DNA of 63,911 bases, the filler included, from Octopus bimaculoides (lineage: Eukaryota): assembly GCF_001194135.2 (NCBI RefSeq). It is 7 parts of 7 records of this genome, joined end to end, with 100 filler letters (N's around TTAATTAATTAA, not from the genome) between each part and the next. Parts side by side here need not be neighbours in the genome. Positions count along the whole stretch, not along the records: positions 60,344 to 63,911 come from NC_068998.1; 6 more parts are not named here. The stretch is one strand, 5' to 3'. Positions 60,543 to 62,955 of the stretch are shown here, one piece after another. The notes beneath the pieces were generated by a model. It worked only from the letters and a program-made list of their open reading frames with translations, was not told the DNA's origin and searched no databases. Numbering within the stretch: the stretch's first letter is position 1; each line of letters starts with the position of its first letter. Both the position numbers and the translations under genes were made by a program.

Positions 60543-60621
60543 TTGACGATTGTCCTCCTGGTGTGGCTGTAGTTTTGTGTGCAAGAAATCCTTGCGAAAA
60601 TATCTCCAGCAAGAGATGTCG
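60543..60621 (+). CDS. Gene 2 exon A, Cys-rich extracellular-type module, first half
   Basis: Acceptor ttgtctttttcttttcgttgcag, donor GTGAGT, phase 1 to 2, DDCPPGVAVVLCARNPCENISSKRC. Confidence 0.88.
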
Positions 60622-60809
60622 GTGAGTACAGCATTGTTGCTATTTTTGTTTTGCCTCGGACCAGACGTGGTTCACTTGATCCAAAATCAAAAGCGTTCCA
60701 ACCATGATTGTCCAGTCATTTACCCGAGTGCATCAATTTATACAGTTCTTATGCCATAGGGGCCTGTTTTATTTTTCGAAGGAGTAGATTCCTATTGTAT
60801 TTTTTATCT

Positions 60810-61165
60810 TTATCTTTTACTTGTTTCAGTCATTAGACTACGGCCATGATGGGGCACCGCGTTGTAGCATTTTTAGTCGAATGAATCAACCCAGTCGTTA
60901 TTATTTTTCAAAGCCTGGTACTTATTCTATCGATCTCTTTCGTCGAACAGTAAAGTTACACCAACACCGGTTGTTAAGCGATGGGGGACAAACACAAGCA
61001 CAAACACGCACACATATGTATACGACGGGCTTCTAGCAAATACACTCACAAAGCTTTGGTCGGCCCGAGGCTTTAATAGAAGACACTTGCCCAAGGTGTC
61101 ATGCGGTGGGACTGAACCCGGATCCATGTGGTTGGGAAGAAAACTTCTTAATGACACTGCCACTC
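60810..61165 (-). mobile_element. SINE family A in gene 2 intron
   Basis: Tail, body and head all recognisable on the minus strand. Confidence 0.88.
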
Positions 61166-61767
61166 CGTTATTCCTTTGCATGTCTCTTCGCGAATTCCAA
61201 ATAACATCAAGGTCACGGGAAGACGATATAATTATCAACAGCTAACATTTAATTAAAGCAATTAAGAAACTCATCAACCTGGAAATTGCGTATTTCATTC
61301 ACTTAAGACTCACAAATTTATGGTCGTGCAAATTTCGAAAAGGACCGGACGAAAGAACGAAAAACGAAACTTGGTTTTCAGAAACCGCAAAAAGAAACAA
61401 AATCTTTTCTAGCCTTTATCAGGCCAGACCGACGAAACAAGTAAAAAAAAAAAATGTATGTGTGTATGTATGTATGTATGTGTGTGTGTGTGTGTATGTA
61501 TGTATGTCATTATTCAGTTTATTTCAAGATTTCTTGCCAATAGAGAGAGAACCGGTTTCTAACCCAGATCCAAGGCTTTTTCATTGGAATTTCAACATTA
61601 ACAACAGGGCATTTTTTTTGCGTATGTATGTATGTATGTATGTATGTATGTATGTATGTATATGTGTGTGCGTGTGTGTTGTGTGTCTCTTAAGTCAGGC
61701 CACGACGTGGCATCAACGCCATCATATCCCCTATAACCAGCCTTTTTTTTATTAACTTCCATTTCAG

Positions 61768-61838
61768 CACCAACATGTGCGGTGGCTGCTTCGCCGAATG
61801 TTTTGATGACAAAAATCAAACAATAACATGCGAACAAA
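61768..61838 (+). CDS. Gene 2 exon B, Cys-rich module, second half
   Basis: Acceptor ttccatttcag, donor GTGAGT, phase 2 to 1, (R)TNMCGGCFAECFDDKNQTITCEQ; in phase with exon A. Confidence 0.88.
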
Positions 61839-61859
61839 GTGAGTGCCATCCTTTTTTTT

Positions 61860-62030
61860 TCTTTGTTGTTGTATTTGCAGTTGTTGTTCTTGTTGTTGTA
61901 ATTATTGTTACTGTTGCTGTTGTTGTTGTGGTTATTGTTGTTTGTTGTTATTCTTGTTCTTGTTGTTATAACTGCCGTTGTTCTTGTTGTTATTGAGGTT
62001 GTTGTTGCAGCTGCTGCTGTTTTTCTTTTT
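61860..62030. repeat. Degenerate (GTT)n microsatellite
   Basis: Direct reading. Confidence 0.9.
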
Positions 62031-62864
62031 AGCCCTAGGCAAGACATGACTAAGCAGACCTATTATCAAAGTCATTTTACTCGTTACCAGTGCTTACCCC
62101 TACCCTACCCTACCCTACCATATCTTAAATGCATACCGGGTACTAATGCTGGCAATTAAAATGTCAGCTAAAATATACACGTACGACTAATTAAGACGTT
62201 CTATTGAAGATGACACACAGTTTACATTTAAAACTATGTATACGAATATACAGTATTCAACTTTCAATTTTTATGAAATTGTCTCCATGGTTAGGAAAAT
62301 GTGAAAAACACATCAAATTGCTGGAATATCTTTTATTGAAACTGACAGCATCAATATGAGGGATGGGCATGGCAATGACAAAGTATTTCAAGCAGTTCAT
62401 CTGGGTGAGCTGGTCATTCGCACGCTGACCCCCATTCGACCACTTGGCTAACATCGACCTCTCCTGTAATTCCTCGCCGACCCTCATAGGCGACCTTTGA
62501 CCTAAAGCGAGACTTTTTCTCAGCGGCAAACAGCAGTTTAAACTGGTCCAAATGATATAAATGAAGTGATATTATTTTCTATCAGAAGCCGAAACTTTCT
62601 TTGCGGTCAAGAGACGCCGGAAATGTTTCATTTCTTTGACCGGAACTTATTTGAGAAAACCGTTGTATCTCACTGTCTGTTAAAATCTTTCATAAGCACC
62701 TCGCAATGACAGCATTTTTTGTGCCTAAAAATGAGGGCCTGGGCGTAAATTGAAGGTAGTAATGATTTTGATGTTTTTTAAAGCCTGTTTAAAAACCTGT
62801 ATCGGACCGTACTATTTGTATTCCACTAATCATGTTTTTCCCCTTTCTTTTCTCTCCTCTGTAG

Positions 62865-62893
62865 ATAACTCGACGGGGAAGGCAACACAATAA
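62865..62893 (+). CDS. Gene 2 terminal coding exon
   Basis: Acceptor cccctttcttttctctcctctgtag, phase 1, (N)NSTGKATQ*. Confidence 0.7.
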
Positions 62894-62949
62894 GAGAACA
62901 GCAACGAAACAATCATTTCAGAGATCGCCGATATAAAGAAAGAAAAAGA

Positions 62950-62955
62950 AATAAA
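62950..62955 (+). terminator. Putative polyadenylation signal of gene 2
   Basis: AATAAA (within aataaataaat) about 57 nt after the stop codon. Confidence 0.5.

Follow-up and report, generated by a model that had tools for sequence, protein, structure and literature searches.

Does the end of a 63,911-nucleotide stretch of DNA from Octopus bimaculoides (hereinafter the window, meaning this whole stretch) contain the last exons of a functional gene and, if so, to which group of proteins does the product belong? The original prediction, made from the sequence of the window, posited at this place the 3' end of a spliced gene encoding an eight-cysteine module, a candidate small secreted protein. 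We analyzed window positions 60344-63911 (hereinafter the piece; 3568 nucleotides, 37.5% G+C) and conclude, with a probability of about 0.85, that it carries the last three exons of an octopus gene that is the ortholog of the gene for the Octopus vulgaris protein CAI9736385.1 and has a secreted, disulfide-rich, single-module product. What is known already is the uncharacterized O. vulgaris gene model, and the kind of protein, namely, small secreted cysteine-rich proteins, is familiar as well.

Structure of the gene end

Splicing in silico of the segments 60543-60621, 61768-61838 and 62865-62893 yields a single reading frame that encodes the 58-residue peptide DDCPPGVAVVLCARNPCENISSKRCRTNMCGGCFAECFDDKNQTITCEQNNSTGKATQ followed by a stop codon. 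The cysteines occupy peptide positions 3, 12, 17, 25, 30, 33, 37 and 47, so that residues 3-47 make up a single 45-residue, eight-cysteine module, and four N-x-S/T sequons are present (NIS19, NQT42, NNS50 and NST51); both counts agree with those given originally. The computed mass of the peptide is 6.2 kDa and the computed pI is 5.05.

Exon 1 opens with TT, the last two bases of a codon that begins in an upstream exon. The three acceptors end in ttgcag, tttcag and ctgtag, with 12, 10 and 13 pyrimidines, respectively, in the 14 nucleotides upstream; both donors are gtgagt, and the + strand of the piece contains no other GTRAGT hexamer. From 5' to 3', the introns have phase 1 (upstream of exon 1), phase 2 (within the module) and phase 1 (following the module), in line with the earlier claim that the module is flanked by phase-1 introns on both sides. 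The two introns contained in the piece are 1146 and 1026 nucleotides long, each divisible by 3. Exon 2 has three in-frame acceptor candidates (61699, 61741 and 61768), and the last one was chosen because this acceptor is conserved in O. vulgaris. The poly(A) signal AATAAA that had been noted is present at 62950 and 62954 and is conserved in O. vulgaris; altogether, there are five AATAAA hexamers on the + strand, so by itself this signal is weak evidence.

The features of the gene, with positions in the window and in the orthologous O. vulgaris locus (L001, described in the next section), are as follows:

60344..60542, + strand: 3' end of the upstream phase-1 intron, with the polypyrimidine tract and the ttgcag acceptor; aligns to L001 12221-12333
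60543..60621, + strand: coding exon 1, (x)TT + DDCPPGVAVVLCARNPCENISSKRC + CG, with the first four module cysteines and the sequon NIS; L001 12334-12412, ttgcag acceptor and gtgagt donor conserved
60622..61767, + strand: phase-2 intron inside the module, 1146 nucleotides, with a repeat resembling short interspersed nuclear elements (SINE-like) and (ATGT)n microsatellites; collinear blocks 86-89% identical to L001
61768..61838, + strand: coding exon 2, C + TNMCGGCFAECFDDKNQTITCEQ + A, with the last four cysteines and the sequon NQT; L001 15618-15688, tttttcag acceptor and gtgagt donor conserved
61839..62864, + strand: phase-1 intron, 1026 nucleotides, starting with a degenerate (TTG)n tract at 61863-62007
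62865..62893, + strand: terminal exon, coding part, AT + NSTGKATQ + TAA (stop codon 62891-62893), the fast-evolving tail with the NNS/NST sequons; L001 17623-17651, acceptor conserved
62894..62975, + strand: short 3' untranslated region with overlapping AATAAA signals at 62950-62959, transcript end inferred; O. vulgaris conserves this region as well as the AAATAAATAAATACACCCAA block

When the piece was shuffled 2000 times under a second-order Markov model, a comparable two-exon chain appeared on one strand or the other in 95 shuffles (4.75%), and one with at least eight cysteines in 3. Because only these 3 shuffles yield eight or more cysteines, the observation of the exons and the peptide, which is correct as described, is unlikely to be a product of chance. 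Read-through of the exon 1 donor (60622-60660) encodes VQHCCYFCFA, a faint echo of the exon 2 sequence TNMCGGCFA; we take this echo to be fortuitous, given that the O. vulgaris intron differs in this part and contains an early stop codon.

An ortholog in Octopus vulgaris

An exhaustive HMMER (phmmer) search of 1.84 billion proteins, with a 30-residue query consisting of exon 1 and four intron-derived residues (window 60533-60622), retrieved three proteins with E-values below 0.001 (P0001, P0002 and P0003). The best match (P0001; E = 2.6e-7, 74% identity) is CAI9736385.1 (UniProt A0AA36FFD5), a 107-amino-acid "Hypothetical predicted protein [Octopus vulgaris]" that forms a single-member cluster. 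P0002, a leucine-rich-repeat protein with HCPPGVTKL repeats, is noise; P0003 is considered below. The complete spliced peptide aligns without gaps to the C-terminal 58 residues of CAI9736385.1, with 74% identity, 91% similarity and all eight cysteines matched, and the alignment crosses both exon junctions and reaches the stop codon. The O. vulgaris model is therefore joined at the same places as the exons originally proposed, which speaks for their reality.

The O. vulgaris locus (L001, OX597831.1:77,066,989-77,094,639, with the gene at about 77,076,989-77,084,639) is collinear with the whole piece. The blocks in the introns and the 3' flank are 86-89% identical (87.7% over 1576 columns), and all three acceptors, both GTGAGT donors, the stop region and the AAATAAATAAATACACCCAA block are conserved. 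The gene in the window is best regarded, on the strength of these comparisons, as the ortholog of CAI9736385.1 from an octopus species other than O. vulgaris, which fits the noncoding divergence of ~12%. The split from O. vulgaris is dated to ~2.5 million years for O. sinensis, ~34 million years for O. bimaculoides and ~44 million years for Amphioctopus (PMC10700109). The two orthologs share the three terminal exons with their splice sites, the eight cysteines and three sequons, and their introns and 3' flanks are collinear; they differ by 15 amino acid changes, 8 of these within the last 11 residues, in addition to the noncoding divergence; furthermore, O. vulgaris lacks a 209-nucleotide foldback insertion that is found downstream of the gene in the window.

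Word-index protein searches came back empty for the spliced peptide, for a synthetic 20-row zCGGCxA alignment and for a SINE-derived control open reading frame (ORF); these negative results are uninformative because the index missed CAI9736385.1 even though this protein and the query have more than 20 exact five-residue words in common. Exact look-ups of five ORFs of the window gave no entry on record, a degenerate DNA pattern of exon 2 had no match in metagenomes, and a literature search for NYCGGC returned nothing relevant.

Selection on the module and the tail

The codon changes between the two octopuses are distributed unevenly along the peptide; the nonsynonymous (dN) and synonymous (dS) rates and their ratio (omega) are:

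Module, codons 1-47: 12 synonymous and 7 nonsynonymous changes; dN 0.064, dS 0.65, omega 0.10
Tail, codons 48-58: 1 synonymous and 8 nonsynonymous changes; dN 0.41, dS 0.15, omega 2.8, a value from a tiny sample that is not to be over-read

For the module, neutrality is rejected (binomial p = 4e-5), and 12 of the 19 changes fall on third codon positions (p = 0.007). Despite three silent changes, the two species have the same protein sequence over residues 25-43 (CRTNMCGGCFAECFDDKNQ), and both keep all eight cysteines as well as the three sequons N19, N42 and N50. The module evolves under purifying selection.

Homologs of the module in bdelloid rotifers and bacteria

What is the module? The original prediction likened it to a CP.G...C..DPC...C..NYCGGC.A repeat of invertebrate extracellular proteins. 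Such a repeat exists and is related to the octopus module; the family is not limited to invertebrates, as bacterial secreted proteins contain it too. P0003, the remaining match of the exon 1 search, is a 641-amino-acid protein with 10 matched stretches; together with its 13 cluster mates, it belongs to a set of unnamed proteins of the bdelloid rotifer Rotaria sordida that contain about 10-13 tandem copies of the module. R. sordida also encodes 138-amino-acid, two-module proteins with an N-terminal hydrophobic leader that carry the source name "Secreted protein". The rotifer module consensus is CPPGQxxVxCxxDPCxGATCPAYPxAKCVSNYCGGCNALWYKADGTPVNC, with 2 to about 13 copies per protein. Examples of the two arrangements are:

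CAF1035266.1, R. sordida: 641 amino acids, tandem modules
CAF1035247.1, R. sordida: 138 amino acids, two modules

In an alignment of the octopus and rotifer modules (A4), the identity is 33-44%; CPPG, a valine, [D/N]PC and N-x-CGGC-x-A are in register, and the loop lengths 8 (C1-C2), 4 (C2-C3), 4 (before CGGC), 2 and 13 (to the last cysteine) are the same in octopus as in the rotifer consensus. The fourth cysteine of the family (Cys4, in DPC-xxxx-C) is absent, with a 5-residue gap in both octopus sequences, and Cys37 of both octopuses, located four residues after GGC, takes the place of a tryptophan that is invariant in 17 of the 17 aligned rotifer copies; in bacterial members, the aromatic residue in this position is W, Y or F. 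Both parts of the earlier claim, that a segment holding one cysteine had been deleted and that a new cysteine appeared after GGCFAE, stand up to this alignment. The rotifer module thus has 50 residues, including the Cys4 segment and the tryptophan, whereas the octopus module has 45, without Cys4 and with cysteine in place of tryptophan; and most of the rotifer proteins are arrays, whereas the octopus protein contains one copy.

Profile comparison with hhalign gives a probability of 95.8% (E = 7e-9) for the octopus sequences against the rotifer modules and 96.2% (E = 2e-9) against a mixed alignment of bacterial and rotifer members. The octopus modules obtain 22-28 bits from a hidden Markov model (HMM) of the family, compared to a mean of 2-3 bits and a maximum of 19 bits for 2000 shuffles in which the cysteines were held fixed; because none of the 2000 reaches the real score, the similarity extends beyond cysteine spacing.

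The rotifer introns are located after DPC-x, in phase 0, and the rotifer modules are not bounded by introns; because of this, and because the intron positions differ from those in octopus, gene structure supports neither common descent nor exon shuffling. In the small rotifer gene, the introns lie exactly after DPC-x, the site of the 5-residue deletion in octopus. The genes for the 641- and 138-amino-acid proteins are located in CAJNOO010000793.1 (L002), at 853-3951 and 6001-6570, respectively, on the same strand and 2 kb apart.

Metagenome contigs were scanned for the pattern of the family alignment, and 10 loci were detected: four are AT-rich and have a Rotaria-like intron after DPC-x, and the others are intron-free ORFs. 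Three of the latter (L004, L007 and L010, from marine metagenomes) end in a type-A sorting domain of the type IX secretion system (T9SS; Por_Secre_tail / TIGR04183, above threshold) and, because of this domain, can be assigned to bacterial secreted proteins. Two metagenome-assembled genomes were added by scanning prokaryotic reference genomes, one from an uncultured bacterium (L014, with the same T9SS architecture and Por_Secre_tail likewise above threshold) and one from Thermoanaerobaculia (L015). The L015 gene (JAWWBN010000146.1, 2482-3594) encodes a 370-amino-acid protein in which a signal peptide precedes a TIMP domain (PF00965, above threshold with E = 3e-8); next comes the module, which reads ...MVHCLVDPCRFSTCDAPGATCVSNYCGGCFAEWYD, and then pacifastin- and VWC-like matches below threshold. 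In BLASTP comparisons to the L015 module, rotifer modules show 52-56% identity (E = 7e-14) and the octopus module 33% (E = 3e-6). The bacterial core is DPC-x4-C-x(4-7)-C-[VI]SNYCGGC-x-A-[DE]-[WYF], and its last position can be compared in CGGCFAEW of L015 and CGGCFAEC of octopus. The bacterial members are multi-domain and intronless, with a shorter CPPG start, whereas the octopus gene is spliced and encodes one module.

No Pfam or NCBIfam model covers the module in the rotifer relatives (scanned at E <= 1) or in the bacterial members, which were scanned as well. Taken at the level of sequence and profile similarity, the octopus module is homologous to an unnamed 50-residue, eight-cysteine domain that occurs in tandem in bdelloid rotifers and as a single copy in bacterial secreted proteins; the family is thus an uncurated domain common to bacteria and at least two spiralian animals.

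The mature N-terminus of the L015 protein starts with CSC, a start shared by the product of another locus (L009, 1024-1929, 68% G+C) that has no Pfam match. The joining of animal-type extracellular modules in this bacterial TIMP-like fusion may merit a separate look.

Comparison with known domains and structures

Several known cysteine-rich domains resemble the module at first glance. The closest by eye is TIL (PF01826), which has similar spacing over the first seven cysteines, is likewise a small secreted module and can form arrays. Some TIL members, such as BSTI, begin with CPPGQ. The likeness does not go beyond resemblance: TIL has 10 cysteines, including a C7-x-C8 pair (CxC) and a terminal C10, versus 8 in the octopus module, Pfam finds no TIL match in octopus (E <= 10) or rotifer (E <= 1) sequences, and hhalign gives probabilities of 0.5-2.8% against six TIL sequences (AMCI, LL-TIL, NAPc2, BSTI, ATI and C/E-1, of which AMCI in full, LL-TIL over residues 6-58 and NAPc2 over its aligned part were confirmed letter by letter). 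This comparison doubles as a negative control for the 96% score within the family.

The octopus spacing 8, 4, 7, 4, 2 is also reminiscent of ShKT (PF01549), a six-cysteine domain ending in C-x3-C-x2-C, in which ShK has the spacing 8, 4, 10, 3, 2; there is no Pfam match to ShKT at E <= 10. For the IGFBP N-terminal / CCN domain (PF00219), which has 12 cysteines and a CPxGV...DGCGCC motif, the octopus CPPGVAVVL resembles CPAGVSLVL of CTGF, but GCGCC is absent and Pfam yields no match. Readings of the module as WAP, VEGF-like or zinc-finger derive from cysteine spacing, without a profile match, and were dropped.

More generally, Pfam detected nothing in the peptide (E <= 10) or in the other ORFs of the piece, and PDB sequence searches returned noise only (the IBR of RNF31 at E ~5 and a Notch EGF), so that no solved relative was found by sequence.

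The 5' end and the proposed maturation of the product

Is the product secreted, and is it complete with one module? The original prediction placed the 5' end, with a possible signal peptide, beyond the join that precedes the piece, and this is where the signal-like exon of O. vulgaris maps. The O. vulgaris model includes two additional 5' exons, of which one encodes MPPFKKSTGIGVMSSVGKRQ and the other, ending in phase 1, PKPSADIMLKQIIVVLMLSSSILAFSLF; the latter ends ~535 nucleotides upstream of the exon 1 ortholog, and the equivalent spot is beyond the edge of the piece. In the ortholog, the product of the upstream exon reads MLKQIIVVLMLSSSILAFS/LFF and resembles a signal peptide: from Met28, the sequence MLKQ-IIVVLMLSSSILAF-S/LFF is laid out like a cleavable signal peptide, the hydropathy peak is at residues 27-39, and AlphaFold predicts a helix at 25-49 in a low-confidence model.

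A tblastn search found no further copy of the module within 10 kb on either side of the O. vulgaris gene, so the check for tandem paralogs that had been proposed came out negative in this range. The product accordingly appears to be a small single-module protein, because the ortholog has 107 amino acids with one module and no neighboring copy. Together with the signal-peptide-like upstream exon, this bears out the earlier description of the product as a candidate small secreted protein.

The following course of maturation can be proposed. The signal encoded in the upstream exon, known from the ortholog, would direct the protein to the endoplasmic reticulum, where four disulfides would be formed and N-glycans could be attached at up to three conserved sequons (N19, N42 and N50); the mature form, once released, would be an acidic glycoprotein with about 58-60 residues, a mass of 6.2 kDa not counting the glycans and a pI of about 5. 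The loss of Cys4 and the gain of a cysteine in the tryptophan position may be compensating changes that keep the cysteine count even. Under this scheme, the last cysteine, having lost its likely partner Cys4, would pair with the new Cys37, and the resulting disulfide would close a short hairpin across the beta-strands suggested at the C-terminus by the low-confidence AlphaFold model. Altered disulfide pairing, as originally suggested, is a reasonable inference from the sequences.

As to function, we can offer a guess, and one more apt to miss than to hit, that the module is an extracellular binding or inhibitor module (a protease inhibitor, a ligand or an antimicrobial); it is prompted by the architecture of a small disulfide domain, by the tandem copies in rotifers and by the TIMP-, pacifastin- and VWC-like regions that accompany the module in one bacterial protein. 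The role in gland, skin or venom that the original prediction mentioned as speculation is still no more than that.

Points against the proposed gene, and alternative explanations

Several observations weigh against the gene as proposed here, or against parts of it. The pipeline behind the O. vulgaris gene models combines evidence from transcripts, from proteins and from ab initio prediction (PMC10700109), and the CAI9736385.1 model may rest on any of these. The nucleotide identity of the exons, 84.2%, is not above that of the noncoding sequence (87.7%), and third codon positions differ by 22% versus 12% in noncoding sequence (Fisher p = 0.04), a mild excess; the low conservation of the exons may be due to faster evolution of a secreted protein or to noise in a small sample. 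The tail, with its 8 nonsynonymous changes and 1 synonymous change, makes part of the protein unconstrained or diversifying. The putative signal peptide is that of the ortholog, its exon being outside the window, and was recognized by inspection and hydropathy; if translation starts at Met1, the hydrophobic segment could serve as a signal anchor, which would make the product a type II membrane protein. Finally, AlphaFold models of the ortholog, built from the sequence alone and with the rotifer modules as the alignment, have the same low predicted local distance difference test (pLDDT) score of 54.7, and a Foldseek search of the PDB with the AlphaFold model found nothing below E = 1.

A broader interpretation, which we hold to be doubtful, is that the module represents an undescribed disulfide-rich family with a patchy, cross-kingdom distribution, in which the octopus gene was acquired horizontally or is a lineage-restricted survivor, with a fast-evolving tail like that of a secreted effector or inhibitor. 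If so, the octopus gene would have gained introns and the exon for the signal peptide and would have re-wired one disulfide through the loss of Cys4 and the replacement of tryptophan with cysteine.

It is very unlikely that the exons are chance open frames or the remnant of a pseudogene, the O. vulgaris model being an ab initio artefact that happened to choose the same sites. The empty word-index searches, the single-member O. vulgaris cluster with its "hypothetical predicted protein" label, the exon nucleotides that are no better conserved than the introns, and the 4.75% of shuffles that give a two-exon chain all fit this explanation. However, it leaves unaccounted for the retention of eight cysteines, splice sites, frame and three sequons in the face of a ~12% noncoding difference, the omega of 0.10 in the module (p = 4e-5), the rarity of shuffles with at least eight cysteines (3 of 2000), and the significant homology that links the module to a separate domain family of rotifers and bacteria.

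The original prediction had itself raised the possibility that the module is one repeat of a large extracellular matrix protein, with more modules upstream. The 10-13 or so tandem copies in the rotifer relatives, the phase-1 introns around the octopus module, which are common in shuffled modules, and the location of the 5' end outside the window would all be compatible with this, but the collinear O. vulgaris gene encodes 107 amino acids, with one module preceded by two short 5' exons (an N-terminal extension and the signal-like segment), tblastn detects no further copy within 10 kb on each side, and the rotifer modules are not bounded by introns; such a multi-repeat protein is therefore highly improbable.

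Retention of intron 2 would extend exon 2 into the (TTG)n tract and give rise to a membrane-anchored isoform with a valine-rich hydrophobic tail. The frame is indeed open for about 50-65 codons past 61838 in both species, to the same stop region, but this openness is uninformative, a repeat made of G and T being unable to contain stop codons. Moreover, an indel puts the window in the cysteine frame and O. vulgaris in the valine frame, such that the tail peptide is not conserved, and a consensus GTGAGT donor is present at the boundary in both species, where the annotated model is spliced; we regard this isoform as extremely unlikely.

Hardly credible, too, is an intracellular zinc-binding cysteine cluster in place of a disulfide-bonded secreted module, for which one could cite the eight cysteines with one CxxC and the fact that the sole PDB sequence matches are the RBR/IBR zinc fingers of RNF31 (E about 5), given that these matches are at noise level, the peptide has no histidine and a single CxxC pair, the N-glycosylation sequons are conserved, the ortholog has a signal-like hydrophobic leader, and all relatives are secreted (the rotifer ones with a signal peptide, the bacterial ones with T9SS domains).

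The gene with a secreted single-module product thus being preferred, its interest lies in that a small, easily missed gene, annotated merely as hypothetical in one octopus genome, is confirmed and tied to a domain family that has neither a Pfam model nor a solved structure and that spans bacteria, rotifers and a cephalopod. With one cysteine lost and another gained, the octopus module is a natural experiment in disulfide re-wiring. Should the guess of a binding or inhibitor fold be true, the octopus protein would provide a compact, single-domain version for expression and structural work; otherwise, it would be an ordinary lineage-restricted secreted cysteine-rich protein.

Repeats and insertions around the gene

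Intron 1 contains, at about 60800-61166, a SINE-like repeat with a tRNA-like GGGACTGAACCCGG core, and more than 15 related copies are scattered over both strands of the 27.6-kb L001. A 103-amino-acid ORF on the minus strand of this repeat is repeat-derived and has no Pfam match. The microsatellites of the piece are:

61454-61507: (ATGT)n
61622-61661: (ATGT)n
61863-62007: degenerate (TTG)n
62098-62119: (CCCTA)n
63708-63753: (GA)n

Rfam matches to mir-297, mir-3149 and a snoRNA are false positives on (ATGT)n/(TG)n tracts, with scores far below the gathering thresholds.

Downstream of the gene, at 63036-63244, is the 209-nucleotide insertion that O. vulgaris lacks, with a duplicated CAGAAAAATGT on its flanks. 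Within the insertion is a hairpin with near-perfect 72-nucleotide arms (63092-63163 and 63164-63235), for which the minimum free energy of the RNA is -102.4 kcal/mol (z = -18), and a 72%-identical piece is present elsewhere in the O. vulgaris locus (L001 26562-26656). The insertion looks like a miniature inverted-repeat transposable element or a foldback transposon and is located about 60 nucleotides past the putative transcript end near 62975.

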